From: Pecten maximus
Lineage: Eukaryota
Direction of reading: 5' to 3'
Assembly (NCBI RefSeq): GCF_902652985.1
Contig: NC_047016.1
Coordinates: 9,858,001-9,922,000 of the forward strand
Length of the DNA: 64,000 nucleotides
Shown here one piece after another: positions 12,401-58,600 of the stretch. Each line of letters opens with the position of its first letter. The first letter of the stretch is position 1. The translations under genes and the position numbers were made by a program. The notes beneath the pieces are model-generated. The model searched no databases. It was not told where the DNA came from and worked only from the letters and a program-made list of their open reading frames with translations.

Positions 12401-15400
12401 CAGGGGAAGACACCCCAAGGCAGGAAGCTCAGGAAATTTACAGGGAAGAGCCAAAAGTAGAGGCACAAAAACCTGCCACTGTAACCAGGCAATCACAAAA
12501 ACATCGCCGCCCACAGACACCACCAGTGGCCAAGGTTGAGAGACCACCTACTCCAGGGGCCAAAGGTAAGGAGGTCAGTGGAGGTCACCGAGGAAACATG
12601 AAGACCCAAGAAAGACCAACTGAACAGACAAGACCCAAGGTGATGGAGGACAGAAGTGTCGGTTCAGACAGTGATGACACTTTGGAAGGATCTGAGGCAG
12701 CTACAGTGGCAACTAAGGCATCAGAAGGAAGGTAAGGATTAAACTGTTTTCTTTGGTCCTATAATTCTCACAGGATCTAATCAATATATTCCACTGTGAG
12801 GATATTAACCTTTTATACAACAGAGCTACATAAATTGTTGCAAGTTAAAATGATCAATCGTGTTTTTTAATCTGGTAGCACAGATTTTTGTGATATTCAT
12901 AGTAATGTCAAATAAAACAACGTCATTTAGTGACAATGTCATGAACATTGTTCTTCATGTTACTACACCAATGGGAGAATTATGATCTGATAACTTTTCA
13001 TTTTGTTTGGTAAGGTTATATAGTGACAATGCAGAGCAAATGGAAATATAACATTGTATCTCTCTGGAAAGATTAAAGGGAGATAACCCAAGAAACATTT
13101 TCAAGAATAAGAATATCTAATAACATTCATGCTGCCGTTCACATCTCATCTTAAAATGACTTTATTCCAGTGAGAAATTCCGGATTCTACAGGATGAGAT
13201 TGGTCGACTCAGGGATGAATTCCAAAAGGCAACAGAACAGCAACGCCACCAGATGATACAACAGCACCAACAACACACCCAACCACAGCCACCACAACCT
13301 CCACAACAACAACAGCAGCAGGACGATTATCATTTCTTTGACCCTACAGAGGATGCCTACGCTTTCATGAGAGGTCCTCGTAGAAGAGCAAATTCTTTCT
13401 CAGGAGCAGGCGTAAGAGATTGGGATGATTGGTGGAAGTACCCCCTAAATAACCCCAACGATGGAGCGGAGATACCTCTGGGTTATGCTGCAGCAGATTC
13501 ATATGCCACACCAAGGAGACAAGCGGCAGCGGCCGCTGCTGCAACAGCTGCTGCATTGGAAACAGGTCAAGAGGTACGCCCTAGGGGTCGACATCGTATC
13601 AGAAAAAAGTATCGCAAGACAACTTCAGAGAATGCAGCGCAGACACAAGCTGGTTATGAATCTGATCAGTCACCAACAAGAGCCACAGCCTCTACTGTCA
13701 CTGATGACCAGTTGTATAATTATTATTTGCCACGATACCAGCACCCTACTCAGGTGGCAGCCACTCCACAGCAGGGCACACAGAGGGCAGCAAGGTACAG
13801 CTCCCAGCCGAACCTCTACTATGCAGCCTATCCCACAGCCTAATACCCAGCCCCAAGTGTATGCAGCACCACCACAACCCACCCAAACTCAGCAATACAC
13901 ACCCAGAACTGCCAACTATTCCACCCCCATCTCCTGCTGGGTTATGGTCTCAGAGCACGGCAGCAGCCACAACATAGGATTCCCTCATCACCACAGCAAC
14001 AGCGCACTTATTCTTATGATGACATAGATGTCCAAGGTCACGGTCACACTTACCAACAAGCACCTGTAGCCTATATCCTGACCGATCAGGTGCCGACAGC
14101 CACTGAGCCGGTGTATGAGACAGCGGTGGATAGTGCTGTTTGTCCACTGTGTGGAGGGGTAGGTTACCACACCCATACTGAACAGGAGGCAGCACCCCAG
14201 ACAGCAACACCCGCAGTCGTGTACACACTACCACAGCCAGTCAGAAGGTAATTCCTCTTAAACTATCTGATGAGTTATCAGCAAATTAACAATAATGTCC
14301 ATGATTTTTTCTATCTCGTGTATACAAAGTCACAGTATATATCACTTTCACACAGAGTCAAAGTAATAGACACATACTTTATGACAATTAGGTAATCTAA
14401 AGAGTGTAATTGGCATCATTATTGTCACCAAACATGTCCACTGAATTGACAATGTGAATGAAATTTGAAAAATACACTGAAACGAAGTCTAGTGCTAAGA
14501 GGTTTCATGAAATGTAGCAATGTCAGGATAAGTGAACACAATTATCAGACATCTATACATAAAGTAACAGGCATATTGTCATTTCCACTGAAGGTTGATC
14601 TATCTGTTGGGGGTTTCATAGTTATTTTCCTTTATTTCTCTGAGAAGGTCGAGACCAAGACCAAGATCAAAATCGGCTACCAGGTTGCGCCACTACTCCC
14701 CTGAAGGAAGAAGGCGGTCACGCTATCTTGTCAGAGAGTATCGTAGTGAGAGTGAGAGTGCTGAGTCAGAGGAAGAGATGTATCACAGAAGGTAAGCAGT
14801 AAAAACACTTCATACAAATAACTTCTTTCAAACAAAGTTTTTAGCTGACTGGGACGAAGTCCAGGGGAACTGTTGCTATACCCCTGGCGTTGCCATCAGT
14901 GTCGGCTGTAGACAGCTAGATTAAAGTTTTTTTTATAAAACAGTGTTGTGTCAATACTAGTGAGGATCGATGCAGCTTAGATATTTGACATATGTTTTTT
15001 CCTTGTGACAAAGTTTTTCCACTGGTATTACTTTTGCGGACCTGCTGACCTTGACCATAACCTTTGATCTACTTTTAAGAAAACTTTAACCTTAGCCACA
15101 GTATGTTAACTATTCGAGATAGGGCTTTCATATTCAACTTGTGTGTTCCTTGTGACAAGACCTAGGGCTTTCATATTCAACTTGTGTGTTCCTTGTGACA
15201 AGACCTTTCTATTGGTACATGTAGTACATTTGCAGACCTGCTGACCTTGACCATGACCTTTGACCTACTTTTAAAAAACTATTTCATAATTTCAACCCAC
15301 CTGACAAGCTATAGTCTTCTGACAACTCTTCTTAAAAGGATATTCTTATACCGGTACATATTTTACTTCATGGAAATCGGGTCCAAAAATCTTATTTCAG

Positions 15401-18400
15401 AACAAGCCTTTTAGGGAAGTATATTTTTGTTCGAAATCTATTCAAAATCGAATGTTTTAATGTATTATTGTTAAGATATAGTTTTTGATACCGATTTTAA
15501 CACATATTGTGAATTATGAACTTTGAATAGGAGCAGAAGTTCAGATAGGAGGAGAAGAAGACCTGCTCGACGATACAGAAAGGTAAAAAATGGTGACCAT
15601 GGTAGCCCCAGCCATGGTGACTGTGGTGATGGTGTCTGCACTGCTGTCGAGACTAACCCGCCTAACAATGACTCTGATGAAGGGGTACGTCAGTCCGTTC
15701 AGACCGTACAGATAGCAGTTACTCTTCGCTCACAGAATAAGGGTCAGTCGGCATCCAGAAAAATGACCTAGTTTCAGACGTAGAAATTCCCAAATATTTC
15801 AAAGCCAATATTCCTGTATTAACAGCTATGAGATGAGTTTTAGATTCGGTATCTGATAGTTACTAATGTTGAGTTAGATGCATGTAAAGTTTGATCAATC
15901 ATTTATACCCAGTACTTATTGCCAGCGATCAGTTACTGGTAGGCCTATTTGATAGATTACCTTATAGAGATACCAAAATGAAGAAAATAAGCAGTGAATT
16001 ATGAGTGAATATCTCCTTCATTAGGGTCTGTGTAACCTATGTACCACCTGTAGTCTATATAAATGTAGCATGTTCTATACACTCCAATGTTTCTCCTCTT
16101 AATTACATAATCTATTCTGTCTATCTGATTACTGTTAATCACCTAGCATACTTGGCCCTTTTATCAAAATTCCTTAACTTAAGAAAATTCCTTAACAAAA
16201 AATTTGCAAAGGAAAGCATTATTGTTTTAAAGAAAAAATCTTAATGAAGGATCTTTTCTTAAATTATGGAATATTGATGAAGTTTGGGCCAGATTTTATT
16301 ATCTGGGCATGCTGGATGCTTGGATATGATGGATAGATTATGCCTTTATATCCTCGATCCATTTCCCTGATCCCCAAAGACATGCATCAAACTTCAACGT
16401 ATATATAGAGATATTTCTTCTGGGTTCTAAGAACACCATCATGTGATGTATAGGTCACTGTGACCTATGTTGCTGCTTCACTGAATATATAGTGTTGCAT
16501 TTTCAGTTTAGTTTTATTTTTTGAAAAAAAACTGGGGCTATACATGTACATGTATATTTATTAAATATTTTCTAGATAGGATCAGCCCTAAAATTCATGT
16601 AATGTATAGTTCTTCCCGTTAAATAAATGAAAAGTTACATACAATACAATCTAGGTGATTTACGGTGTCTGTAATCCTTCTGTGTATGTTAACCAGTGTC
16701 ACACTTGCTGTCTACTCACTTCTTACATTTTCTGTCTGATTCTTACCCAGAGTTCTCTACAGTTGCGGATCCAATGGAAAAGGGGGTTGTATGCATCATA
16801 TTTTGTTTTTCAACATGTGTTAAAAAAGTTTAAAATATGTCATAGTTTTTAAATTCAAAGCCCAAAGTTGAACCCCTCTTGGTTATAAAATTAAGGATCC
16901 GCCCCTGTCACCTCTATTGCACCATGTCTCTACATATATGTATTACTTGTGTCTGTGTTTTACCCTAGAGTTTTTATACTTATGACTGATACATATAGTT
17001 AACATGTTGTTTGTATATCTATTCATAATTACAGTATAAAACTTATCTGAGAAGTTTGTTGAGTGTTTGTAATCCCGGATTTTTTGTGTAATGAATTATG
17101 ATACTCTCCATATAAATGTGTTATACATTATCATAATTTAATATAATTCATACTTTAATATTGTGTTTTTATTGGTAATCAATCCGCACAAGTTATATAA
17201 CTTATACATACTTTTTACTGTACCTGAGTAATTAAAGTGAAGAAAATCAATGCTGTATCACCTCATACTATATAAATTAATTGATTGACATGTTTTGTTG
17301 TTTCTCTGTGATTGGATGATATCAGTGTGAACTTGGTGGTATGACACCGTGTCATGATTCAAATTTCTATTGTTGTGAGTTATAAATTGTTCTTTAAAGC
17401 TCACATGCTGTACACCAAATATGTACTTGCCAACACTCGATATTTAGAAGGTACAGATTTTCAATTTTTACCCAGGTTTTAGGCATGCTGAATTGTCAGT
17501 CTGTATTGCATGGATTCATAATTTTCTTAATTCAACAAGCCAGACAGAAGGAACAGCTTGAATTATGTTGTTAGATCACTTGCCAGAAGAGTTAAAGAAC
17601 TTATCTATGGCACGGTGCAGTATCTGTCTGCCATTTATCCATCAATCTTTTCCTTCAAACAACTTCTTCAACTTCTTGGTCAAAGACCAAGAGGTCCAGG
17701 GTTATATTGGGCCAAGGGGTATGCTGGGAGGAAGGACATAAAGTTTATTCAAATGAATGACATATACACCTGTACATAATTCCAAGGTCACAGGGGTCAA
17801 ATGTACTCAAACCTTTCAATGATTTCTTCTATTAACAAATAGAATCAAGGGTGCCACATTAGACCAGTAGTATGCTTGTATGAAGGATTTTAAGTTTGTT
17901 TAAGTGTAACAGATTGCAGGATTAATTAAATTTAAATCACTGCCTCCGCTAGGGATCGAACCCGGGACCTCTGGCTTACTAGTCTTACGCTCAACCGATC
18001 GAGCTAAGGAGAAGATCTCTCTAGCCGAGCGGTATATTGCGGCTAGTATTTACCAGGGTTACATACTCCCCCTCCAGGAAAGAACTCGTCCTCGAGTTTC
18101 CAGGGGTAACAGCGATGCTTTCGCAAGCAGCGATGAATATCATTCCCGAGTCCCTACATGGGCGCCAATGTAACAGATTGCAGGATTAATTAAATTTAAA
18201 TCACTGCCTCCGCTAGGGATCGAACCCGGGACCTCTGGCTTACTAGTCTTACGCTCAACCGATCGAGCTAAGGAGAAGATCTCTCTAGCCGAGCGGTATA
18301 TTGCGGCTAGTATTTACCAGGGTTACATAAGGATGTATGGGTCAATGTGTTGACATTTTCAGATGTTTTTTTCTGAATAATCCAGAAGACCAGTATTATG

Positions 18401-29800: not shown

Positions 29801-32800
29801 TATAGCCCCTCCCCAGGGGCAAACTTGAGACCCCTGGATCATGAAATTTACAATTTTGGTAAAGCACCTTAAGACCCTTCCATCTATGAAGAGTGTTTGA
29901 TTCCAGCATATCTGAGAGTAGAGAAGAAGATTTTTGAAGTTTTAGTCAATTTGGCCCTTTTTAGCCCCGCCCATCAGCCCCTTGGGGTCAGTCAGGGCCA
30001 ACATGTGCATGCCATCAAACTGTCATCTCATGCTGACAATGTTTACAAAATTAGAATGAATTCCAATAGAAATAAAATAAATTAAAGTCAAAAATGTGAT
30101 TTCCCTATATAAACTATAGTAAAGTTTAGCCCCTCCCCAGGGGCCAAACGTGAAACCCCTGGGTCATGAAACTTACAATTTTGGTAAAGCACCTTAAGAC
30201 CCTTCCATCTATGAAGAGTGTTTGATTCCAGCATATCTGGGAGTAGAGAAGAAGATTTTTGAAGTTTTAGTCAATTTGGCCCTTTTTAGCCCCGCCCATC
30301 AGCCCCTTGGGGTCAGTCAGGGCCAATATGTGCATGCCATCAAACTGTCATCTCATGCTGACAATGTTTACAAAATTAGAATGAATTCCAATAGAAATAA
30401 AATAAATTAAAGTCAAAAATGTGATTTCCCTATATAAACTATAGTAAAGTTTAGCCCCTCCCCAGGGGCAAACGTGAAACACCTGGGTCATGAAATTTAC
30501 AATTTTGGTAAAGCACCTTAAGACCCTTCCATCTATGAAGAGTGTTTGATTCCAGCATATCTGAGAGTAGAGAAGAAGATTTTTGAAGTTTTAGTCAATT
30601 TGACCCTTTTTGGCCCCGCCCCTCAGGCCCCTGGGGGGTGGGGACCATATAATTTACAATTTTGGTTGACCTTTAGCTATAGAAGCTTCCTGCAAAATTT
30701 CATAGAATTTGGTTTGTGGGTTTTGGAGAAGAAGTTGAAAATGTGAATTGTTTACGGACGCACGACGGACGACGCACGACGGACGACGGACGACGCACGA
30801 CGACGGACAAAAGGGGATTAGAATAGGTCACTTGAGACTTTGTCTCAGGTGACCTAAAAACATTGTCTTATCCAAGAATGAGTACATCATGTGCATGAAT
30901 TATTATGGTTTCCAGATCGAAGTAATGCACAATACCTAACCAGGGAAATAGATACGATACAGTTACGTCCTTGACCTAACAAATAACTTTGTAATATAAA
31001 AGAAAAAAAAAAATGGTTTGCTAATGTTTTATGGGATCAAATTTGAAAATGTTATGTATAGGAAAATACAAAATAGAACAAATTTTCATCACAACTTTAT
31101 CTTCACCACTACTGCCCATAAAACAATCTTAACAAGGGCAACACAAAGCATAGCAAATCACATGTACCTCGTGACCTTGACCTTTGACCTCGGATGTTGA
31201 GAATGAATCTGTCCTCTGTCCATAAGTCATATGTGTACCAAGTTTGATCAAGATGTGCCTAATGGTTTAGTCTCGATCGCGTTCACAACAAAAGTATGAC
31301 GCACGGAACCACGGCGGTGTTACTATACCCCTAGCTTTGTGTAGGTTTAATGAAGTGACTTCATATGACATATCTATATTATAGAGTAGGATAATTATTA
31401 GGACTGACAATAAATCATCATTGTACATAATTTCACATGGATGCTCATGAAATGAAAGCACACACAGAATAAAAAGTAAATACCTTGTTCATGCTGTCAG
31501 CTAAAAGACCAAATACTATCTAATTAAACTATTATAGGTTATGGACTTTATCATCCTGGTTTCAGTGCATGTGCTCAGGAACGGAAACAACTGTGTAAAA
31601 TAAGCACTTGAAAACTTGACGTATACAAGCGTTGGTGTGATCTACCGCTTCAGTTTATCGTTACCAAGCTCACATCAGGTATGTGTGATTGCTTTGTTGC
31701 CCCCCCATGGTAAGTAGAATAATTTTCACTCAAGAAAAGAAAAACAAAGAGGAATGGATACATGCTTCATAGCTATTAACTACTACATACGTTGAACCAC
31801 TACTTCTATCTACACCTCACAACTTCTATCTTCAGACCTCTAATCAACCTTTGGTATGTAACCTGCGTGCGCACCCCCACATGTGTCTACACCTCAACTT
31901 CCGCCAAGACAAAATTAATAAAGCCCACTAGGTGGCTTTACACATTGCCATAATATCCTTTTGACAAAAGAATTAATTGAAATATCACAGTTGTTGACCG
32001 ACAGAAAACAGACTAATATGTGTACCTTGGTTTTTTCGTGTAACCATGACAACACCCTTGCCATCCTTGGCTGGCTCTACACCAATCGTCTTGCGCTGAA
32101 CAATTCCGTTGTAGCGGAATGAGTTGATAGCCTTCAAATTGTTGGGTTCCTGAAATGCAATTCGGTTACATTGATAATTTTTACAATGGTGGATTGATAA
32201 ATAATAATAGATTTAAATTAATGGTTCTTAAAGTTACAAATGTATTAACCAAAGTGTTATCTAACTGAAATTAGTTTTAACATCAGAAATAAATGATGGG
32301 GTAAACCTCAGTCCTGTTATATGAACTTACTTCAGAAGAAGACCTGTATGTTATTTGTAATCTTCAAGAACAGAATGATGACCTCTTCTGATAAAACGAA
32401 CATAAATGGTCGCTTGAAAATACCTGTCATTTATTTTTAACAACATATATGTAATCAATTTTCCAACTTTTACTACTGTTAACAGTAAATACTTAAAGTA
32501 GTTTGAAATTTTCACTTCATTCCAAATATAAAATTCATACATCATCAACTAAAGGCTGTTTGAAGGATTTGAGAGATTTATGAACCATGTCAGATTTCCA
32601 ATTCAAACTGTAAATTTGACCAATTTGGGAGAAAAAAAAAAGAAAAAAAGAAGTCACATTTCATTTGTGCCAAATAGATCATGCAGTTTCAATGATTGAC
32701 ATAGCTTTTCACATGCATGCTAAAAAGGCCTTTCTGAATTGATCAAATCTTCAATTTCCTTATCCCCCCCCCCCCCCCCCCATATTTATATTTGTTTGTC

Positions 32801-32963
32801 TATAGCAGATATTAGTTTGGGCTGGTGGGATTTTAGTGTCTACTAGCCCTTGGATAGTAATAAGAATTTTGTTTTACTGTACCATGCTAAAAGTTCTCTT
32901 GTTTCCCTTCAGCAGGAAACAGGAGTTGTTCCTGATGATGGCCCATTGTACATCGGCTGACAT
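23890..32963 (-). CDS. RPL28: 60S ribosomal protein L28 (eL28), 134 aa
   Basis: Exons 32963-32883 ([27 protein letters not shown]), 32149-32026 ([36 protein letters not shown]), 24886-24768 ([10 protein letters not shown]) and 23970-23890 ([19 protein letters not shown]...TAG). All introns GT-AG, phases consistent; AATAAA at 23860-23865 (-). Confidence 0.97.
24225..24670 (-). mobile_element. Degenerate SINE-like interspersed repeat in the last RPL28 intron
   Basis: Motifs GTAGTGCCACCTCACTG, GAAGACACCCAGCAGGAC and AGAGACTCTGGTATGTC resemble mollusc SINE bodies; boundaries approximate. Confidence 0.35.
25303..27386. mobile_element. hAT-like non-autonomous DNA transposon with 6-bp TSD, nested in a mariner-type MITE
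   Basis: TIRs CAGGGATCACC / GGTGATCACTG flanked by GTAAAA on both sides. Removing it rejoins a GGTCGTTATA-repeat MITE that ends GCAGGTTTGACTGTA at ~27473. Confidence 0.7.
28013..28830 (-). mobile_element. HINE/Helentron non-autonomous element (older copy)
   Basis: AACAAGAGGCCCATGAGCCTT hairpin end and AATAGGTCACCTGAGACTTCATCTCAGGTGACC palindromic end; homologous to 29212-30860. Confidence 0.75.
29212..30860 (-). mobile_element. HINE/Helentron non-autonomous element with central ~325-bp tandem array
   Basis: Terminal hairpin AAGAGGCCCATGGGCCTT, subTIR pair GGTCACCTGAG/CTCAGGTGACC, (GACG)n microsatellite 30755-30808, about 4 internal repeats with period 316-325, A-rich flanks. Confidence 0.85.
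31131..31335 (-). mobile_element. Short HINE-like element
   Basis: AACAAGGGC start, GTGACCTTGACCTTTGACC core, GACGCACGG microsatellite remnant, ACTATACCC end. Confidence 0.45.
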
Positions 32964-33184
32964 GGTGACTTCTTGAATCTGTAAAAACAAAACATCAGAT
33001 ATAGAAAATAAATTAACTTCCTCCATTCATCTAATTTGTTGAAATCTGCAAAGATGTAAAATCTATACCCCAAGCAGAGACTTAGAACAAACTCATACAT
33101 GTGTGACAGTTAAAGGAGCGGGTTGGTGTGGCTTGTACATATAGTGTTTAATACATGCTCTATCACTCAGCTGATCAGCATGCT

Positions 33185-35762: not shown

Positions 35763-35790
35763 CTCAGGAAGTTACAGCGAGAAAGAGAGT
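35763..35790 (-). promoter_or_regulatory. RPL28: RPL28 non-coding exon 1 with TCT initiator / 5'TOP tract
   Basis: Minus strand CTCTCTTTCTCGCTGTAACTTCCTGAG|GTGACC donor; splices to the acceptor at 32978 upstream of the ATG. Confidence 0.75.
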
Positions 35791-36053
35791 AAGAAAGTAG
35801 TTCGTGAGTGAGAACTGATAAAAATGATCACACCAATTATTTGGAAATGTATTTATTTTTTGTGTATACAGGTATGGTATCTTTCAAAATAGATTAAATA
35901 TCATTCGATTGTCCAATTCAATAATGAGTTAAAATTTTGATTATATCCGAGAACTCTTTCGAGTAGCGGATGAATGATAGTTTTTGCCGGAAACAGCTAA
36001 ATTCTAATAAGGAAGCCTGATTATCTTTGTGACGGAAATTGCGGATAGCTAAG
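35790..36053. promoter_or_regulatory. Bidirectional promoter (RPL28 / triple-MLLE gene) and 5' UTR exon of the MLLE gene
   Basis: Divergent first exons under 300 bp apart; strong donor AAG|GTAAGT at 36053; ETS-like CCGGAA/CGGAAA motifs. Confidence 0.6.
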
Positions 36054-36560
36054 GTAAGTACGGTATGTTTTTTTCTTCTGTTTTTCTATACATCAATATG
36101 CAATTGTTTACTTCGTAAATGTCACAATTAGTCCTTAAATTAAAATGTGTAAATAGTCGGCTTCAGGAAACACATGACGCAGACGTCCGGACTGTTTTGA
36201 ATGGTTTGTTGACCAAAGGGAGATAATATTATTGAGAAAAAAGGTTGCAATGAACAAGCTCTGTTTACACATACATTTTACACATTCATGTAAAACCATA
36301 AACTGTCTAAATTGAGTTTTTTTGCATTACAAAATTTACAATTTACAAAATAAAAAGCATGGCACGACATAGATAAACACTATTAAAATGATATTATTAT
36401 ATATAACTGTTTCACAAAAAAAAAAAAAAAAAACCCAGTATAGATAAGCTCTTGTACACTTGCAATTGTACTCCCCATATTATGCCAGCATAAGTATAAA
36501 ATATCATCAAATATAATAACGGAATCATAAAAGAGCATATAATTTCTATATTTATGCTAA

Positions 36561-38059: not shown

Positions 38060-38970
38060 TTCGGAATAAATAATTATATATTATACTCTTTTAGCATTCC
38101 ATAATTACATTTTATGATATTGAATATTTTTGTGATGCAGCAGTATAAAATTTTGTGCTGGCAGCTATTGGATATAAGTGTCATGATCCATATATGTTTG
38201 ATTATATGTTGGGTGTATTGACAGATGAGGCGAGTACCTGTGGTTCAATAAACATATTTCAAGTTTGGTAGGAAAGGGATAATATCCCAGAGTAACAGAG
38301 GTCAAAATACTTATAGTATCTTGTAATTAACTAGGGGAGAATCAGGTCTAATGTGACTAAAGCATTCAGATGTGAAAAGCATTTTTTTGTTTTCATGTTT
38401 TTGTTTTTTTTATGTTGTTTTGCAAATATAAATGTTTTGTTAATGACTATCAACTTCCATGTATTTTAAATATCAAACAGATAGCTTGCTTGGATTGAAA
38501 AATAAAATTATATACATATAGACTTAGACCATTTGCAATGTGACATTCCACTTCCCCAGTTGCAATTTCTCAACCATTAGATATGTTAAAATACTGTTGT
38601 GATATTTAGCTTGATAAGGCTTTAAACTATGTTTTAAAAGTATGATCGAATCATAAGTTTGTCTTTCATGTAATTTACAGGTAACATGGACTCTATGAAA
38701 CATTGGTGTCTGAAGACTGAATGGGGAAAATAAAAGACCAGATTCCAGCAGATTCTTTACAAATTAAATGTTTCCAACTTTGAAATTTATTTCTTGTTCA
38801 TATATATTTATAAATCAGTTATGTAGAAAATGACATTGGTTATATATGTAAACCCATCCTTTCCCTCTCACACCCCATCAGTCTACCTTCATAAATAACA
38901 GGTTAAATAGTGTAATTTATCACTGATAATATCTGCACAGAGTGACTACATCAATGCGGTGGTCAACAAA

Positions 38971-41900
38971 ATGTCACAGAAGAACATGGACAATATGAAG
39001 CATCCCAAGTTACTTGACTTTAGGGAAGTTTTAGGAGAACATCTTTATAGTAAAGTACTTGAGTATTGTAGAAATGAGTGCCATGCACAGAAAATAACAG
39101 GAATCTTATTGGAGTGTGGAAAAGAAGACGCCTTCCGCTTGCTGGAGGACAAAGATTTCCTAGGAACTAGGATCCGTTTAGCAGAAGAAACTTTGAAGGA
39201 ATGGTATGTGAAGGAATGATATTTTAAGGAAGAGTATGTGAAGGAACGGTATGTGAATGAAAGGTATGTGAAGGAACAGTATGTGAAGGAACAGTATGTG
39301 AAGGAAAGGTATATATGTGAAGGAAAAGTAGTATGTGCAGGTTAAATTTTAATTGTGATAGCAGCACTAGCTCTTGATGTGTTTCCTTAACACAGTTTTT
39401 CTCATCCATAAATCACTGCTAGTCAGTGAAATGAAGGAATTCCAAGCCATTGCTCGATAGTTTTCATTTATTCTGGGATCTTTAAAGCACATCATTTTAT
39501 ACTTATATTAAGGACATATACATGGTGCTGTATTTGTTGTTGCCATATTTGATTTACTAAATACCCTAATACTTTCTACTTAGAAATCTGGAGAAATTTG
39601 AATAATTTAAAAACATTTAGGAACTTTAAAAAGTAGTCATAAGAGACAATGTTTTGAAGGTACATACAATTTAGCAAATGGATAATATGAATTGCTAAGT
39701 TCAGGTGAAAGGATGGGAGGCTCAGATCATAAAAAGAATATGGGTTCTTACCTGTGTAACAGATGGGATGTTTAATAGGACAGAGGAACAGGTAATAAAA
39801 GGCGACATGATACTTCACACTATAATAAAGAAATTGATACATGTATGTATTAACATGGGGCTTATTCTCTGTTGTAGTGGATCGTATATAGAGGAAAACG
39901 AATTAGTCAAGGCACTTCCTGCTTCAGAAATTCTTCCCATCTCTGTAGCTGATTCATTGTTTGAAAAAGTCAGTCAGCTAGAACCAGCATTGCCTTGTCA
40001 GATAACAGGTAAGATTGAAAATAAAATTATTCTCTTAACATGTTATTGGTCTTCCATTATTATATTTAAATAAAAACTTTAAAAAGTTTCAATATTATTC
40101 AAATTCTAACAAAGTACCAGCAGTATGTACATAAATGGTCCCTTCACCTATAGCTATGTCACATCTCACATTGCTAATAAACTGTATTGTCACTATGTAA
40201 ATAAAAGACCTTATGTAGATGTGCATGTGACCTTTTTTCTTTGAAATTTTAGCTGCCATATGGTAAATGGTCACTTTAAACAGGTTTTTGATAAAGGGCC
40301 ATAACTCTTCAGTCAATTTCATTAACCTTTGTAAAATGGTGAATTAAAAAAAAAACCTATATTTTGACATATTAGGTGTTTCCAAAACTATTACCTTGGC
40401 AACACAATCCCGAATATGATTGGGCAAAGTTAAGATATTGGCCAATTTTGACCAAATTTATTATACAAAGGTATTTGCATTTTGTTGCCATGAAATCCAA
40501 GCTAAAGCCAGAAGTGACTTTGATGGGTCAAAATTTAATTATTGACTGATTCTGACCAAATTTGGTGTACAGGGGTATTAAGGGATGCCAAACATCACTA
40601 TATAGGATTTGTTGCCATGGCAACCTTGCTGAAGCAAAGAGTGGCCTCTTCTTGGTTGAAATTTAGATACTGCTCTAAACTTGATATTTAGGTGAATTAA
40701 GGATACCAAATAAATATTGGCTTCTGTACAGATAAAATTCCCATATGAGAATTTTGGTATTGAAATGAAATCAAAAACAATTTTCTGCTGAACATAAAGA
40801 GAAATAGTGTATCAAATTGAATTCTCTATATATTGATCTGCCAATAAATTTAAGCCCATACCTGGTAGCAAACCTTAGCCTATTGCACTTACATTGTACA
40901 TGCATGTATTAGATAATGCACTTTACATTTCATGGTATCTATAATTAATACATACAGGCCCTTTATACATCTTGATACTGACATACATTATAGTATGTAC
41001 AGGTTTTTGATATGTGTTTATTACCATACTTGTATCATGCATACTCTTTTCTTAAGGAATGTTACTGGAAGCAGAATCTGTGGAAGTGGAAATGATGTTA
41101 CATGACCCCGAGGTCCTAAGGCAGGCAGTAGAGCAAGCACTGATGTCTCTGTCTGCTAGAGAGCCTGAGGCAGTTGAGGAGGTGTCTGATAATTTCAGTG
41201 ATGAGGGTTCAGACACTGAAGATTCCATAGGAGACCAGTTGTTTGAGGCAGTGGAGAACATATACCCTGATTCAGATATAGCTTCTAAAATTACAGGTTT
41301 GTTATCATAGATTCATCGTCTAAAGGTTTAACGAGATATAGTTTCAAAAATCACAGGTTTGTTATCATAGATTCATCGTCGAAAGGTTTTACTAGATATA
41401 GCTTCCAAAATCACAGGTCTGTTATCATCCTTTAAAGGTTTTACTGCAAGTGATTCATCACTCATTGTCTTAATCTGTTGTTAGAGTTGTCTAGTCACCT
41501 ACTATATAATTACCTACTGTTAACAAATGGAAGAGTCTAGTCACCTACTGTTAACTAATGGAATAGTCTAGTCACCTACTGTTAACTAATGGAATAGTCT
41601 AATCACCTACTGTTAACGAATGGAATATTCTAATCACCTACTGTTAACTAATGGAATGGTCTAGTCACCTGTAAACTAATGGAATAGTCTAGTTACCTAC
41701 TGTTAACTAATGAAATAGTCTACATGTAGTTACCTACTGTTAACTAATGGAATAGTCTAGTTACCTACTGTTAACTAATGGAATAGACTAGTTACCTACT
41801 GTTAAATAATGGAATAGTCTAGTTACCTACTGTTAACTAATGGAATAGTCTAGTTACCTACTGTTAACTAATGGAATAGTCTAGTCACCTACTGTAAACT

Positions 41901-44900
41901 AATGGAATAGTCTAGTTACCTGCTGTTAACTAATGGAATAGTCCAGTCACCAACTGTTAAATAATGGAATAGTCTAGTTACCTACTGTTAACTAATGGAA
42001 TAGTCTAGTCACCTACTGTAAACTAATGGAATAGTCTAGTTACTTACTATTAACTAATGGAATAGTCTAGTTACCTACTGTTAAATAATGGAATAGTCTA
42101 GTCACCTACTGTTAACTACTGAAATAGTCTAGTTACCTACTGTTAACTAATGGAATAGACTAGTTACCTACTGTTAACTAATGAAATAGTCTACATGTAG
42201 TTACCTACTGTTAACTAATGAAATAGTCTACATGTAGTTACTTACTGTTAACTAATGGAATAGTCTAGTTACCTACTGTTAACAAATGGAATAGTCTAGT
42301 TACTTACTGTTAACTAATGGAATAGTCTAGTCACCTGTAAACTAATGGAATAGTCTAGTTACCTACTGTTAATTAATGGAATAGTCTAGTTACTTACTAT
42401 TAACTAATGGAATAGTCCAGTCACCAACTGTTAAATAATGGAATAGTCTAGTTACCTACTGTTAACTAATGGAATAGTCTAGTTACCTACTGTTAAATAA
42501 TGGAATAGACTAGTTACCTACTGTTAACTAATGAAATAGTCTACATGTAGTTACCAACTGTTAACTAATGAAATAGTCTACATGTAGTTACTTACTGTTA
42601 ACTAATGGAATAGTCTAGTGACTTACTGTTAACTAATGGAATAGTCCAGTCACCAACTGTTAAATAATGGAATAGTCTAGTTACCTACTGTTAACTAATG
42701 GAATAGTCTAGTTACTTACTGTTGACTAATGGAATAGTCTAGTCACCAACTGTTAAATAATGGAATAGTCTAGTCACCAACTGTTAAATAATGGAATAGT
42801 CCAGTTACTTACTGTTAACTAATGGAATAGTCTAGTTACCTACTGTTAAATAATGGAATAGTCTAGTTACCTACTGTTAAATAATGGAATAATCTAGTTA
42901 CTTACTGTTAACTAATGGAATAGTCTAGTTACCTACTGTTAAATAATGAAATAGTCTAGTTACCTACTGTTAACTAATGGAATAGTCTAGTTACTTACTG
43001 TTAACTAATGGAATAGTCTAGTCACCTACTGTAAACTAATGGAATAGTCTAGTTACCTACTGTTAACTAATGGAATAGTCCAGTCACCAACTTTTAAATA
43101 ATGGAATAGTCTAGTTACCTACTGTTAACTAATGGAATAGTCTAGGTACCTACTGTTAACAAATGGAATAGACTAGTTACCTACTGTTAACTAATGGAAT
43201 AGTCCAGTCACCAACTGTTAAATAATGGAATAGTCTAGTTACCTACTGTTAACTAATGGAATAGTCTAGTTACTTACTGTTGACTAATGGAATAGTCTAG
43301 TTACCTACTATTAACTAATGGAATAGTCTAGTCACCAACTGTTAAATAATGGAATAGTCTAGTCACCAACTGTTAACTAATGGAATAGTCTAGTTACTTG
43401 CTATTAACTAATGGAATAGTCTGGTTACCTACTGTTGACTAATGGAATAGTCTAGTTACTTACTGTTAACTAATGGAATAGTCTAGTTACTTACTATTAA
43501 ATAATGGAATAGACTAGTTACCTACTGTTAAATAATGGAATAGTCTAGTCACCTGTAAACTAATGGAATAGTCTAGTTACCTACTGTTAAATAATGGAAT
43601 AGACTAGTTACCTACTGTTAACTAATGAAATAGTCTAATGTAGTTACCTACTGTTAACTAATGAAATAGTCTACATGTAGTTACTTACTGTTAACTAATG
43701 GAATAGTCTAGTGACTTACTGTTAACTAATGGAATAGTCTACATGTAGTTACCTACTGTTAACTAATGAAATAGTCTACATGTAGTTACCTACTGTTAAC
43801 TAATGAAATAGTCTACATGTAGTTACTTACTGTTAACTAATGGAATAGTCTAGTCACCTGTAAACTAATGGAATAGTCTAGTTACCTACTGTTAACTAAT
43901 GAAATAATCTACATGTAGTTACCTACTGTTAACTAATGAAATAGTCTACATGTAGTTACTTACTGTTAACTAATGGAATAGTCTAGTTACTTACTGTTAA
44001 CTAATGGAATAGTCTAGTTACTTTCTGTTAACTAATGGAATAGCCTAGTTACTTACTGTTAACTAATGGAATAGTCTAGTTACCTACTGTTAACAAATGG
44101 AATAGACTAGTTACCTACTGTTAACAAATGGAATAGACTAGTTATCTACTGTTAAATAATGGAATAGTCTAGTTACCTACTGTTATCAAATAGAATAGAC
44201 TAGTTACCTACTGTTAACTAATGGAAAAGTCTAGTTACCTACTGTTAAATAATGGAATAGTCTAGTCACCAACTGTTAAATAATGGAATAGTCTAGTTAT
44301 CTACTGTTAACTAATGGAATAGTCTAGTTACCTACTGTTAACTAATGGAATAGTCTAGTCACCTACTGTTAACTAATGGAATAGTCTAGTCACCTACTGT
44401 TAACTAATGGAATAGTCTAGTTACTTACTGTTAACTAATGGAATAGTCCAGTCACCAACTGTTAAATAATGGAATAGTCTAGTTACCTACTGTTAACTAA
44501 TGGAATAGTCTAGTTACTTACTGTTGACTAATGGAATAGTCTAGTCACCAACTGTTAAATAATGGAATAGTCTAGTCACCAACTGTTAAATAATGGAATA
44601 GTCCAGTTACTTACTGTTAACTAATAAAATAGTCTAGTTACCTACTGTTAAATAATGGAATAGTCTAGTTACCTACTGTTAAATAATGGAATAATCTAGT
44701 TACTTACTGTTAACTAATGGAATAGTCTAGTTACCTACTGTTAAATAATGGAATAGTCTAGTTACCTACTGTTAACTAATGGAATAGTCTAGTTACTTAC
44801 TGTTAACTAATGGAATAGTCTAGTCACCTACTGTAAACTAATGGAATAGTCTAGTTACCTACTGTTAACTAATGGAATAGTCCAGTCACCAACTTTTAAA

Positions 44901-46868
44901 TAATGGAATAGTCTAGTTACCTACTGTTAACTAATGGAATAGTCTAGGTACCTACTGTTAACAAATGGAATAGACTAGTTACCTGCTGTTAACTAATGGA
45001 ATAGTCCAGTCACCAACTGTTAAATAATGGAATAGTCTAGTTACCTACTGTTAACTAATGGAATAGTCTAGTTACTTACTGTTGACTAATGGAATAGTCT
45101 AGTTACCTACTATTAACTAATGGAATAGTCTAGTCACCAACTGTTAAATAATGGAATAGTCTAGTCACCAACTGTTAACTAATGGAATAGTCTAGTTACT
45201 TGCTATTAACTAATGGAATAGTCTGGTTACCTACTGTTGACTAATGGAATAGTCTAGTTACTTGCTATTAACTAATGGAATAGTCTAGTTACTTACTGTT
45301 GACAAATGGAATAGTCTAGTTACCTACTATTAACTAATGGAATAGTCTAGTCACCAACTGTTAACTAATGGAATAGACTAGTTACCTACTATTAACTAAT
45401 GGAATAGTCTGGTTACCTACTGTTGATGATGGAATTGTCTAGTCACCACATTTTAATGATGGAATTGTCTAGTCACCAAATTTCAATGATGGAATTGTCT
45501 AGTCTCCAAATTTTAATGATGGAATTGTCTAGTCACCAAATTTTAATGATGGAATTGTCAAGTCACCAAATGTTGATGATGGATTTGTCTAGTCACCAAA
45601 TGTTGATGATGGAATTGTCTAGTCTCCAAATTTTAATGATGGAATTGTCTAGTCACCAAATTTTAATGATGGAATTGTCTAGTCACAAATTTTAATGATG
45701 GAATTGTCTAGTCACCAAGTGTTGATGATGGAATTGTCAAGTCACCAAATTTCAATGATGGAATTATCTAGTCACCAAATGTTGATGATGGAATTGTCTA
45801 GTCACAAATTTTAATGATGGAATTGTCTAATCACAAATTTTAATGATGGGATTGTCAAGTCACCAAATTTCAATGATGGAATTGTCTAGTCACCAAATGT
45901 TGATGATGGAATTGTCAAGTCACCAAATTTCAATGATGGAATTGTCTAATCACAAATTTTAATGATGGGATTGTCTAGTCACAAATTTTAATGATGGAAT
46001 TGTCTAGTCACCAAATGTTGATGATGGAATTGTCAAGTCACCAAATTTCAATGATGGAATTGTCTAGTCACCAAATTTTAATGATGGAATTGTCTAGTCA
46101 CAAATTTTAATGATTGAATTTTCTAGTCACCAAATGTTAATGATGGAATTGTCTAGTCACCAAATTTCAATGATGGGATTGTCTAGTCACCAAATGCTAA
46201 TGATGGAATTGTCTAGTCACCAACTGTTAATGATGGAATTGTCTAGTCACCAACTGTTAATGATGGAATTGTCTAGTCACAAATTTTAATGATGGAATTG
46301 TCTAGTCACCAAATTTTAATGATAGAATTGTCTAGTCACCAACTGTTAATGATGGAATTGTCTAGTCACCAAATTTTAATGATGGGATTGTCTAGTTACC
46401 AAATTTCAATGATGGAATTGTCTAGTCACCAAATGTAAATGATGGAATTGTCTTATCACTAAATGTAATTGATGGAATTGTGTATTCATCAACTGTTAAG
46501 AATTGAATTGTCTAATCGCCAACTGTTAAGTGATGGAATTGTCTAGTCTATTCAAGGCATCTACAATGTAACAGTACGTGTTTCAGTAGCAATAAGAGAT
46601 CCACATGCTGTTCATTCAACACTTACTTCAGGTTTAGTGTATGCAATCTGTCACATCATAGAAGTTGACAGGGAAATCTTTTTATAGTCAAAATGGGAGA
46701 CATTTGAGTGAATGTTTTGAGAAGCTTGAGACTTACATCCTTCATTTTCTGTTGACAGGTATGTTGATGGAGTCGGGCAGTCTCAGCCTGGAGCAGCTCC
46801 TGAAAGACAGACAAAACCTGACTGCTAGGATACACCAGGGTTATACAGCTCTTCAGCTGAAGGATTAG
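38971..46868 (+). CDS. Stand-alone tandem triple-MLLE (PABC) domain protein, 237 aa
   Basis: Exons 38971-39203, 39878-40008, 41057-41296 and 46759-46868 (714 nt, phases consistent). Three MLLE signatures: LGEHLY..KITGILLE, VADSLF..QITGMLLE, IGDQLF..KITGMLME. No RRM or HECT exons in the locus. Confidence 0.85.
39194..39340. repeat. Short (GTATGTGAAGGAA) repeats beginning at a splice donor
   Basis: Repeated copies of the donor sequence after the exon ending at 39203. Confidence 0.75.
41274..41440. repeat. 60-bp triplication of an exon end plus donor
   Basis: AGATATAG(C/T)TT..AAAAT(T/C)ACAG|GT(T/C)TGTTATC at ~41274, 41334 and 41394. Confidence 0.8.
41490..46548. repeat. ~5-kb intronic satellite: 31-bp unit switching to a related 30-bp unit at ~45423
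   Basis: (CTAGTTACCTACTGTTAACTAATGGAATAGT)n followed by (CTAGTCACCAAATTTTAATGATGGAATTGT)n. Confidence 0.97.
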
Positions 46869-47594: not shown

Positions 47595-48681
47595 GGGTAT
47601 AATACCATTAGTATAGATGGTGGACGAGAGTTCTGGGTATTAATATAGACGATGGATGAGGCTGTTATCCTGGGTATTAGTATAGACGATGGACGAGACT
47701 GTTATCCTGGGTATTAGTATAGATGGTGGACGAGACTGTTATCCTGGGTATTAGTATAGACGGTGGACGAGACTGTTATCCTGGGTATTAGTATAGATGG
47801 TGGACGAGACTGTTATCCTGGGTATTAGTATAGATGGTGGACGAGATTGTTATCCTGGGTATTAGTATAGATGGTGGACGAGACTGTTATCCTGGGTATT
47901 AGTATAGATGGTGGACGAGACTGTTATCCTGGGTATTAGTATAGATGGTGGACGAGACTGTTATCCTGGGTATTAGTATAGATGGTGGACGAGACTGTTA
48001 TCCTGGGTATTAGTATAGACGGTGGACGAGACTGTTATCCTGGGTATTACTAAGACGGTGGACGAGACTGTTATCCTGGGTATTGATATAGACGGTGGAC
48101 GAGACTGTTATCCTTGGTATTACTATTAGTATAGACGGTGGACGAGACTGTTATCCTGGGTATTAGTATAGACGGTGGACGAGACTGTTATCCTGAGTAT
48201 TAGTATAGATGGTGGGCGAGACTGTTATCCTGAGTATTAGTATAGACGGTGGACGAGACTGTTATCCTGGGTATTAGTATAGACGGTGGACGAGACTGTT
48301 ATCCTGAGTATTAGTATAGATGGTGGGCGAGACTGTTATCCTGGGTATTAGTATAGATGGTGGACGAGACTATTATCCTGGGTATTAGTATAGACGGTGG
48401 ACGAGACTGTTATCCTGGGTATTAGTATAGACGGTGGACGAGACTGTTATCCTGGGTATTAGTATAGACGGTGGACGAGACTGTTATCCTGGGTATTAGT
48501 ATAGATGGTGGACGAGACTGTTATCCTGGGTATTAGTATAGATGGTGGACGAGACTGTTATCCTGAGTATTAGTATAGATGGTGGACGAGACTGTTATCC
48601 TGGGTATTAGTATAGACGGTGGACGAGACTGTTATCCTGAGTATTAGTATAGATGGTGGGCGAGACTGTTATCTTGGGTAT
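47595..48681. repeat. 37-bp minisatellite (GGGTATTAGTATAGATGGTGGACGAGACTGTTATCCT)n
   Basis: Period 37 (47701 to 47738); degenerate copies on the 5' side. Confidence 0.96.
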
Positions 48682-53516: not shown

Positions 53517-55708
53517 TCATCTTGTCTTGCGGATAGGACCTGTCACGATGATACCTGCGAAAAGAATAGATACATTTATGACTGAATTCCCTGAAGTAGT
53601 TTTCTACTCTATGCTTGGCTCCGCTTCGAAAATACAGTGTGAGGAAAACTTATGTGAGAAGCATAACGGAGATAAATTGCATCAAGGCAAGAAACTCCGG
53701 CAAAATAGATGCGAGTTGTGTAACTTCAATTTTAGCATGACACGAACATAAACAATGATAAACAAAGAAAAAGAATTGTCACGAAGATGTTGGATTGTGG
53801 TTCAAATAGACAACTTGATGTGTCGTTTACTAATATACAGTGTTCTAACGTTGTAAAATGTAACCCAAGACCTAGACAAAAGTACTATATATAAGCATGA
53901 AGGTTTCTGCTGTAAACTACCGACCCGCCTACCTTTTCCTCTGTAGACCATGGTGACTGCTGCCCCTGGTGACGTAGCTGATATCATAGGATACACAGTT
54001 TGTCCCTCAATGTCCATATCGGAGAAGGCGCACCCATAAAATATCCCATCAGCCCCAAATAATAATTTCCTCTCTGGTATGTCGACATACATGTAAAATC
54101 TGTCCGGTAACTTACGTTGACCACCCCTGGGAAACTTTGAAATCTCCTTTCCGTTGTGAACCGTACGTGACGTCACAAGATCAATTCCCCATGAATCCTT
54201 TGTTTCTCCAACTAGGGCAGCACTTTTATGAAGGTAAATTGGTGCGCTTTCGTTTGCGATTCCCACACTAGCATGTTTTCCTCGCATCCACGTCGGGAAA
54301 CCTATCTCAAAGATGTGACGGCCTTTACAAAATCCTCGACTCCATTTCACTCCATATGTTGTCTCCGGATCTGGAAGAAATTTTAAATCAAAACTAATAG
54401 CTAATGGTTATTTGACGTGTTCCTGTTGTCAGTGATCATAACGCAAATCACAAGAGGTGAACGGAATGTTTGATTGAGGAGACTTTACCTACCTCCAACA
54501 TAAGATTTGGGAGTTCTTCTCTCTTGATTTTACCTTCCTCCAACATAAGATTTGGGAGTTCTTCTCTCTTGATTTTACCTTCCTCCAACATACGATTTGG
54601 GAGTTCTTCTCTCTTGATTTTACCTACCTCCAACATAAGATTTGAGAGTTCTTCTCTCTTGATTTTACCTTCCTCCAACATCAGATTTGGGAGTTCTTCT
54701 CTCTTGACTTTACCTATCTCCAATACTACATTTGGGAGTTCTCTCTTGACTTAACCTACCTCCAATACCAGATTAGGGAGTTCTTCTCTTTTGATTTTCT
54801 CCAATACCAGATTTGAGGATTTGAGAGTTCTTCTCTTTTGATTTTACCTATCTCCAATATCAGAATTGGGAGTTCTTTTCTTGACTTTACTCACCCTTTG
54901 ATTGATTAACTACTGTGTTTTCATTAATCCTCCTGAAACCGGTTGCCTTGGCGACAAGGTGATCTGCAAATGTTCTGTTGGAACGGACCGTTGTTGACAT
55001 CCAAGGGGCGGGGTCCTCACCGCCAGCAGTATCTATACATATGTTGAAAATATCAGTTTTAATTGATCTTCAATTCGTTAAATGACTTCTCGAAAATATT
55101 ACCAATACATATCGCCAAGTCAATAAATTAGTCCCATCATTCATTTCAGATATTGTGTTTCTCTGACTGTAACCATTTTAGAGACATGATACACGGGATT
55201 AAATCAATCTGTTGATACTGTGGATATTCTAACCTAGTAATCTGACGTGATTACTAGTGTGACTTAAATGACCATTTTGTAAATTGAAGACCACGGATGA
55301 GTTTATTGGGCGCCATTACGATCTGATTAGGGAACGTTTTACTTCCTTGCGTGGTATTAAGTTATACAATGTTAATATGCCAGGTGGTTCCGTTATCTAA
55401 CCTGATCTCATATTAGGTTGGCCTAGAGTGACATTGGGGTTTATTGATAAACAGATAACGCTGACCATTCCGGATTAACTGGTCTCATATTATGACCTTG
55501 ATTGGCCTAAAGTGGTAAAAAGTTCACTGTACCAAAACTATAGAAAGTTATAACAAGTTCACTGTACCTAAACTACAGAAATCGGTAACAAGTTCACTGC
55601 AATTTTGATAAGCGTTAACATCTTCAGCTAGTGAAATATCGTGCATGAGAATATGAAATACTTACCGACACTGGAGTGCCATGTATTTGGACTTACTACA
55701 TTGCCCAT
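53517..55708 (-). CDS. SPSB/Gustavus-like SPRY (B30.2) domain protein, 218 aa, N-terminal MGNxxS, no SOCS box
   Basis: Exons 55708-55666, 55032-54895, 54370-53933 and 53554-53517 (657 nt, all introns phase 1). SPSB motifs GFCKGRHIFEI, RGKHASVGIA, LVGETKDSWGIDL, PDRFYMYVD, YGCAF and VYPMISA; ends GKGIIVTGPIRKTR*. Confidence 0.82.
54480..54893. repeat. 45-bp minisatellite starting at the exon-2 donor of the SPRY gene
   Basis: (TTGATTTTACCTTCCTCCAACATAAGATTTGGGAGTTCTTCTCTC)n, about 9 copies. Confidence 0.92.
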
Positions 55709-57526: not shown

Positions 57527-58600
57527 CTACAGACTAGAACTTGCTGGCGTTCTCAATGATTGGGAACCAAATTTGATCGTAGCGACAGCAACACATTTCG
57601 ACGACGATTTATTATGAATAGAGAAATGCACTAATTGGTCGTTTGTTTTATCTTGCCATGTGGAAACCGTCAATATCTCGCAGGCGCGAGATTCGCCGAG
57701 ATGTATGATATCGAACTCTAGAACTGGGTACAAGAGTATATCTGACGTGAAGTGTCTATAATAACCGGACTGAGACGCTTCCTCTACACCCTCCAGACAG
57801 AACTGTATGTATTCTGTCTGATTGACATGGTTGTTGAAGTCTGTGTCACTATATCTGGTTTTCACTTCACTCCGGAAACACTCTTCGGGAACTTGCTGAA
57901 ATTCTCGACTTGTTTTGACTTCATTTTGTAAAAGATCAAAGTTAGCACTAGTAGCAGACGTATGTTTTACTTTGAACCACTTGGGCAGTGGAGTTGGGCG
58001 TCTGGTGTCCACATTCGTCATGACGAGAGCGGTTACGCAACGGGCAAGCTCTACTTTTGTATCTGCGCATGACAGGATGTACAGATTGGTCATAGATGTG
58101 CGCCCTACTGCAGCTGCTCGACTCGCCACAAGAAGATCGGACGACGATAAGCGTACAATGTCACAATAAAGATGATTTGACAGTCTCAGACTCTGGCTTA
58201 CGAGGAAAAAGGCATGTGTATAATCATTATCAATGTTAGCACGGTCAAAATATCCATTCCGAAATGCCAAGAACGCTGCATTCATGAAGAATTTTGCGGT
58301 GGATCGTATTCCCAAATGCCCTGGAAAAAGAAATGGTTTTAGTTGTCCATGGACAGTTTTTATCGGAATCATTTCTTGTTTAAATAGGTACAAAACAAAT
58401 TTCTTTCGAGTAATGTTTTCACCACCAGCTTTAATATACATGTAGATGCATTTATAAGACCGAATACCATATAGGTGACCGCACCTGTTCTATCCAAGTA
58501 AGATGATGGGAATTCCTCTAAACAACACCAGCCCACTGTGAGAGTTAACAGAAATGATCTTGTACTGGGGAGTATCATGGGCACCACTGAAAAAAGACAT
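57527..58600 (-). CDS. Intronless double hot-dog acyl-ACP/acyl-CoA thioesterase-like protein (5' end frameshifted)
   Basis: 304-aa ORF with RYSDTDFNNHVNQTEY (acyl-ACP thioesterase catalytic motif) and an N-domain VGRTSM...TRRPTPLPKWF. Probable ATG at 58600 needs two frame changes to join the main ORF. Confidence 0.72.

Follow-up and report, generated by a model that had tools for sequence, protein, structure and literature searches.

MLLE (PABC) domains, which bind peptides, have been described only in the poly(A)-binding protein PABPC, in UBR5 and in the fungal protein Rrm4 (PMC9249222, 2022). The residues of PABPC1 that hold the linear motif PAM2 (PABP-interacting motif 2) are listed in PMC2854688, where Gly579 is called perfectly conserved. 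The MLLE of UBR5 was nevertheless crystallised with a PAM2 peptide (3NTW), though it lacks this glycine. A 64,000-nucleotide stretch of the genome of the scallop Pecten maximus (contig NC_047016.1, C2:9858001-9922000, hereafter the window) carries a gene of a different kind. This gene, LOC117316855, encodes on the + strand, between positions 38971 and 46868, a protein of 237 amino acids in which three MLLE domains stand in tandem with no RNA recognition motif (RRM) and no catalytic domain beside them. The explanation favoured as a whole, with a probability of about 0.6, is that LOC117316855 is an RNA-free triple-MLLE protein which acts as a competitor or clamp for PAM2 motifs, and that its gene is coupled to the ribosomal protein gene RPL28.

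A preliminary description of this DNA had taken MLLE in animals to be a single-copy domain of PABPC and UBR5/HYD. A literature search on the locus names and on MLLE proteins of the tandem, multiple or stand-alone kind returned only the work on fungal Rrm4 and unrelated papers. The gene model itself was already present in RefSeq. What is new here is the recognition of the architecture as that of a conserved metazoan family, together with the repeat-wise orthology, the gene structure and the linkage to RPL28.

Results

Gene structure and domain content of LOC117316855

The Pecten maximus assembly (3983 contigs) amounts to 918,306,378 bases; no runs of N occur in the window. Manual reading of the sequence gave four coding exons on the + strand with a spliced coding length of 714 nucleotides (237 amino acids). 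Coding exon 1 (38971-39203, within the exon 38941..39203) begins with the ATG at 38971, ends at the donor GTATGT and encodes residues 1-77 plus two further nucleotides, including the entire MLLE repeat 1 (residues 17-78, from 39019). Exon 2 (39878-40008; acceptor ..TTGTAG, donor GTAAGA of a phase-1 intron) carries linker 1 and the N-terminal half of repeat 2, up to ..QITG. Exon 3 (41057-41296; 240 nucleotides, phase 1-1; acceptor ..TCTTAAG, donor GTTTGT) completes repeat 2 with its C-terminal half (MLLE...), then encodes linker 2 (residues 156-176; acidic) and the N-terminal half of repeat 3, up to ..KITG. The C-terminal half of repeat 3 (MLME...) and the stop codon TAG (46866-68) are encoded by exon 4 (46759-46868; acceptor ..TTGACAG).

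The scallop protein P0001 was found with HMMER using exon 1, and a word-index search with P0001 led to P0099, the RefSeq entry 'uncharacterized protein LOC117316855' of Pecten maximus (237 amino acids). Comparison by a local script showed that the spliced model and P0099 are identical letter for letter. The complete frame of four coding exons and 237 amino acids reported in the preliminary description is borne out by this identity and by the canonical splice sites.

The start codon is preceded by an in-frame stop (38908) and an AG acceptor (38939-40), with no other ATG from the acceptor to 38971. Hence coding exon 1 is an internal exon, and the frame opens at 38971. A candidate non-coding first exon was read at 35960..36054 (+; start approximate), whose consensus donor AAG/GTAAGT (36054/36055) would join the acceptor at 38940. 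The gene probably consists of one non-coding exon upstream of the four coding ones.

As read from these borders, the repeating exon unit appears to be 'C-half, linker, N-half' of an MLLE domain, so that variants with 4-7 domains could come from exon duplication. Since exon 3 is symmetric and 240 nucleotides long, its skipping would yield an in-frame form with two domains. Two of the donors lie at the opening of tandem repeats. That of exon 1 opens a repeat at 39194-39330 (15-bp unit, about 8 copies), which starts in the last codons of the exon. That of exon 3 opens a repeat at 41274-41428 (60-bp unit, 2.6 copies), which copies the last 23 nucleotides of the exon together with the donor. Read-through, or the use of a later copy of the donor, would run into a stop codon at either repeat. 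Most of intron 3 is occupied by a 31-bp satellite of about 162 copies (41510..46547).

The domain content of P0099 was assessed with Pfam. MLLE (PF00658) was matched with 128 bits (E 1.4e-37) in three stretches, the curated cut-off of this family being 27 bits. No further family reached its cut-off; the protein hence has no RRM, HECT domain or UBR box. When the exons were scored separately, exon 1 gave an MLLE match of 47.9 bits (E 1.4e-12) and exon 3 gave two partial MLLE stretches (34.2 bits); exons 2 and 4 were too short for separate scoring. The signature motifs KITGILLE, QITGMLLE and KITGMLME were located at residues 41, 119 and 199, respectively.

In the AlphaFold2 model of P0099, three four-helix bundles are predicted with a local confidence score (pLDDT) of 80-90, while the linkers (residues 85-97 and 156-176) score below 50; the global score (pTM) is 0.32. 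The model suggests a beads-on-a-string arrangement in which the bundles are joined by two flexible linkers, about 13 and 21 residues long; linker 2 is acidic and rich in serine. The top matches in Foldseek were MLLE domains, many of them with PAM2 bound (3kus_B, 0.8 A over 56 columns; 3ntw_C, 0.5 A over 54), and the best match by sequence in the PDB was 1jgn (E 1.3e-06). A structure search of the Protein Atlas with the whole model returned only unrelated folds with template modelling (TM) scores below 0.35, as expected for a beads-on-a-string model. Both the profile search and the structure prediction accordingly agree with the three MLLE domains, and no other domain, of the preliminary description.

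A metazoan family of multi-MLLE proteins

HMMER with exon 1 retrieved 79 proteins at E <=0.001 among 1.84 billion representatives. They are mostly 200-260 amino acids long with three matched stretches, and some members have 4-7. MLLE was the only Pfam domain in 35 of 35 aligned members. The family was found in Cnidaria (Nematostella, with four MLLE), in molluscs (scallops, Pinctada, Mytilus, Patella, Nucella, Octopus and Argonauta), in the annelid Owenia, the brachiopod Lingula and the nemertean Lineus, in echinoderms (Lytechinus, Acanthaster, Holothuria and Anneissia), in the hemichordate Saccoglossus and the cephalochordate Branchiostoma, and in fishes (Narcine, Heptranchias, Amia, carp, goldfish and Puntigrus). 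No tetrapod, insect or nematode was seen among the named family entries. The proteins are all annotated as 'uncharacterized' or, in UniProt, as 'PABC domain-containing', or they are misnamed ('PABP 4' or, in several fishes, 'hyd-like'). What had looked like an oddity of molluscs is instead a wide metazoan family, fishes included.

Some mollusc gene models fuse MLLE repeats to MIF4G and RRMs or to a partial kinase (P0036 and P0108 of Mytilus edulis, P0026 of Babylonia, P0043 and P0122 of Octopus, and P0014), and others of this set have 6-7 MLLE domains in proteins of 600-1750 amino acids. They may reflect either genuine expansions or the fusion of gene models.

The relation between the repeats was addressed with a tree of the single repeats. 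In this weakly resolved tree the repeats cluster by position across phyla, with 12 changes of position label compared with a mean of 23.4 after shuffling; none of 200 shuffles gave so low a number. By eye, each position also has its own motif: repeat 1 shows LGEHLY.KV, repeat 2 carries EP..CA ahead of its signature, and repeat 3 has MLLEM. Phase-1 introns at TG/M interrupt repeats 2 and 3 in the scallop and in the sea urchin Lytechinus; in Owenia the intron of repeat 3 was seen, and in the goldfish-type carp such introns lie in repeats 1 and 2, the two with mapped exon borders. The PABPC and UBR5 genes of the scallop do not have the TG/M intron. Triple-MLLE proteins belong to an ancient family of metazoan proteins with several MLLE domains and no RNA-binding part, in which each of the three repeats has its own conserved identity across phyla.

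PAM2-contact residues in the three repeats

The contact positions listed in PMC2854688 were tallied in 26 representatives of the family (78 repeats). Gly563, Glu564, Phe/Tyr567, Thr582, Met584, Leu585, Leu586, Glu587, Ala610 and Leu614 (PABPC1 numbering) are kept in all three repeats; Thr582 and Gly583 are each kept in 77 of the 78. The core pockets for Leu3, Ala7 and Phe10 of PAM2 are thus retained in all repeats, as is Glu587, which contacts Asn4 of the motif. Repeat-specific conserved residues are found at the groove-lining positions 588, 606, 609 and 613; the position of Lys606 is occupied by R, A and K in repeats 1, 2 and 3, respectively.

Several points weigh against canonical PAM2 binding. 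Gly579 is replaced by Q, C and S in the scallop repeats, and mostly by A, S, D or E elsewhere in the family. The equivalent of Lys580, a PAM2-contacting residue, is Q in scallop repeat 2, as the preliminary description had pointed out (QITGMLLE), and the same exchange recurs in repeat 2 of 7 of the 26 representatives. Scallop repeat 2 lies on a long branch of the repeat tree. Moreover, the additional MLLE domains of fungal Rrm4 can bind PAM2-like or unknown motifs and not PAM2 (PMC9249222).

Taken together, the loss of Gly579 from every repeat, the change of Lys580 to Q in repeat 2, the conserved repeat-specific residues in the groove and the precedent in PMC9249222 speak for a dedicated adaptor for non-canonical (PAM2-like or unknown) motifs, which would link partners in a pathway apart from the PABPC network, as MLLE1-3 of Rrm4 do with Upa1. 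Such an adaptor is nevertheless considered rather unlikely: the pockets for Leu3, Ala7 and Phe10 and the Glu587 contact are kept in every repeat, and UBR5 binds PAM2 without Gly579 (3NTW). The Gly579 contact, moreover, runs through the backbone, and the scallop UBR5 MLLE has Pro at this position. From the conserved grooves, the best reading is RNA-free multivalent binding of PAM2-type motifs.

The presence of canonical ligands was also considered. Canonical PAM2 motifs, such as LSVNAPEFVP and SKLNPDAPEFIP, are encoded in the scallop genome. A single complex prediction for the whole protein P0099 with a 45-residue fragment carrying a PAIP1-like scallop PAM2 (L007:1447-1581:-) gave a score of 0.01, which weighs neither way on binding. 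That the three repeats prefer different ligands, as had been suggested from repeat 2, is plausible because the repeats carry conserved position-specific residues and the Q of repeat 2 recurs in 7 of the 26 representatives.

A near-canonical PAM2 motif, SQLNPKANEFIPT, was also noticed in long open reading frames that occur in many copies and contain an integrase-like core, as in retrotransposon Pol (L011, L012 and L013 on G000 contigs C8, C18 and C15; also L008). These frames may belong to a mobile element mimicking a PABP-binding motif.

Divergent pairing with RPL28

Upstream of LOC117316855, the gene RPL28 (eL28) lies on the - strand at 31985-33026 and is transcribed away from the triple-MLLE gene, in a head-to-head arrangement. 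Its exon with the ATG (32963-32961) was placed at 32883..32978 (-) and its second coding exon at 32024..32149 (-; Pfam Ribosomal_L28e, 35.3 bits). A candidate 5′ exon of RPL28 was read at 35764..35800 (-), where a pyrimidine tract resembling a terminal oligopyrimidine (TOP) element is accompanied by a donor. A candidate shared bidirectional promoter would lie between this exon and the putative first exon of the triple-MLLE gene at about 35960-36054 (+). A second copy of RPL28 on contig C12 was considered and rejected; the other Ribosomal_L28e match in the genome is MAK16.

Of 10 genomes inspected, 7 have RPL28 as the divergent upstream neighbour of the triple-MLLE gene (Pecten, Owenia, Lingula, Saccoglossus, Branchiostoma, Amia and Carassius, spanning five phyla). 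In Lytechinus, Nematostella and Patella, no such pair was seen within 8-10 kb. Conservation across five phyla marks this pair as one of the few divergent gene pairs of very great age and suggests that transcription of the triple-MLLE gene is coupled to the expression of a ribosomal protein gene.

The same conservation in 7 of 10 genomes could be attributed to a direct action of the protein on PABPC or on the translation machinery, for example by binding a PABPC linker or a ribosome-associated factor, so that the tie to RPL28 would be functional beyond the promoter. Linkage, however, indicates shared regulation at most and not a shared complex, no sequence feature besides MLLE was found in the protein, and the pairing is absent in the sea urchin and in Patella without loss of function. 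Such a direct role is thus improbable.

The outer neighbours of the pair are mostly species-specific. One exception is an ODR4-like gene downstream in Saccoglossus and Branchiostoma (L027, L028), which may point to a larger conserved block in deuterostomes.

Transcription and selection

The status of LOC117316855 as a separate gene was addressed with an orthologous transcript. L005, a 1325-nucleotide Logan mRNA contig of another scallop, contains an uninterrupted frame of 239 codons. It aligns to the window in four blocks only, the ends of which coincide with the exon borders (e.g. 38950-39203, 39877-40009), and its 377-nucleotide leader has 10 in-frame stops ahead of the start codon. The four-block alignment and the stops in the leader rule out a longer RRM or HECT gene of which these exons would form the 3′ part. 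Similarity of the 5′ and 3′ untranslated regions of L005 to the window was undetectable, so this comparison gave no position for the non-coding first exon.

Comparison with the L005 scallop over 233 codons gave a ratio of non-synonymous to synonymous substitution (dN/dS) of 0.10 by the method of Nei and Gojobori (NG86) and of 0.135 by maximum likelihood (ML). The gene is conserved and under purifying selection. Four runs of a single study (X1-X4) contained 0.21-0.22 of the words sampled from 38800-41400, the share of exons in this region being 0.23; these values fit spliced RNA, the kind of runs being a guess. No contigs encoding P0099 or P0023 were on record. Four MLLE loci were found in the genome: two tandem PABPC-like genes, one UBR5-like gene on another contig, and the triple-MLLE gene.

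An upstream exon does exist, given the AG acceptor 31 nucleotides ahead of the ATG, but a reading of these exons as the tail of a larger gene with RRM or HECT domains, or as a decaying, functionless duplicate, is close to refuted by the in-frame stop at 38908 with no ATG between acceptor and 38971, by the orthologous mRNA with its 10 in-frame stops before the start, by orthologues of 200-260 amino acids in more than 10 phyla-level lineages that start just ahead of repeat 1, by the upstream gene being RPL28 on the opposite strand, and by the dN/dS of 0.10. The stand-alone status proposed at the outset, without RRM or HECT, is thus confirmed by the orthologous mRNA, by selection and by the family.

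Flanking regions

Upstream of RPL28, open reading frames rich in Gln, Ser and Arg extend over 6772-15771 on the + strand. They have no Pfam match and are probably exons of a gene for a low-complexity protein. Downstream of LOC117316855, a second satellite (37-bp units x 29) lies at 47607-48681, about 0.7 kb past the stop codon. It is followed by an exon with a SPRY domain (53802-54350, -; 35.1 bits) and by an open reading frame of 304 amino acids with thioesterase-like matches to 4HBT_2 and Acyl-ACP_TE_C (57527-58441, -).

Discussion

The triple-MLLE protein of 237 amino acids would be of a cytoplasmic type. Each repeat would bind a PAM2-type linear motif in its conserved groove, which lies between helices 2, 3 and 5, in the way that the MLLE domains of PABPC1 and UBR5 do. 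Because the protein has no RRM, its PAM2 partners would be held away from poly(A). Candidate partners would be proteins of the PAIP1/2, ataxin-2, eRF3, Tob, PAN3, GW182 and LARP types. Two modes of action can be envisaged. Rivalry with PABPC for PAM2 proteins would make the protein a buffer or sponge. Alternatively, up to three motifs could be gripped together, which would make it an avidity clamp or a scaffold. The repeat-specific residues, Q for Lys580 and R, A and K at Lys606, may confer distinct preferred ligands on the repeats.

A wider role is put forward tentatively. The protein may be a regulator of the PABP-PAM2 network that is at least as old as the cnidarian-bilaterian ancestor and has three non-equivalent MLLE receptors. 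Its gene would have stayed head-to-head with RPL28 from the bilaterian ancestor onwards, so that its dose would follow ribosome production, and the protein, which is kept in fishes, would buffer or cross-link PAM2 proteins of deadenylation, termination, miRNA silencing and the control of TOP mRNAs.

A conserved animal protein consisting of three MLLE domains alone would be a fourth class of MLLE protein, and the first that has a PAM2 receptor but no RNA-binding or catalytic part. If the proposed binding is true, the protein could alter the set of PAM2 proteins that gain access to mRNAs bound by PABP, with consequences for the shortening of poly(A) tails, for termination and recycling in translation and for miRNA silencing. 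Members are present in tractable species (Nematostella, sea urchins, amphioxus and cyprinid fishes), and the hypothesis is therefore directly testable.

The likeness to known systems differs from case to case. With the MLLE of PABPC1 the scallop repeats share the Pfam family, the KITGMLLE signature, the helical bundle and most of the PAM2-contact residues. They differ in that Gly579 is replaced and the first short helix is not predicted, and the protein has three domains where PABPC1 has one. No RRM was matched in the triple-MLLE protein; it thus lacks the four N-terminal RRMs of PABPC and with them poly(A) binding. UBR5 (HYD/EDD) also has a four-helix MLLE without Gly at 579. It has, however, a single MLLE in a protein of about 2800 amino acids, and its UBR, UBA and HECT parts have no counterpart in the 237 or so residues of the scallop protein.

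PAIP2 can be compared as a functional analogy only. Like the triple-MLLE protein, it is a small RNA-free protein, and both would modulate the interaction network of PABP by competition. PAIP2, however, binds PABP through motifs of its own, PAM1 and PAM2, whereas the non-homologous triple-MLLE protein has the receptor domains and would bind proteins that bear the motifs. A parallel in domain arrangement is Rrm4 of Ustilago maydis, with three MLLE domains on flexible linkers, a distinct role for each domain and a conserved domain number (PMC9249222). Rrm4 is a fungal protein with three RRMs, and its far more divergent MLLE domains recognise motifs of Upa1 that are PAM2-like; in the animal family an RNA-binding part is lacking and the grooves are nearly canonical.

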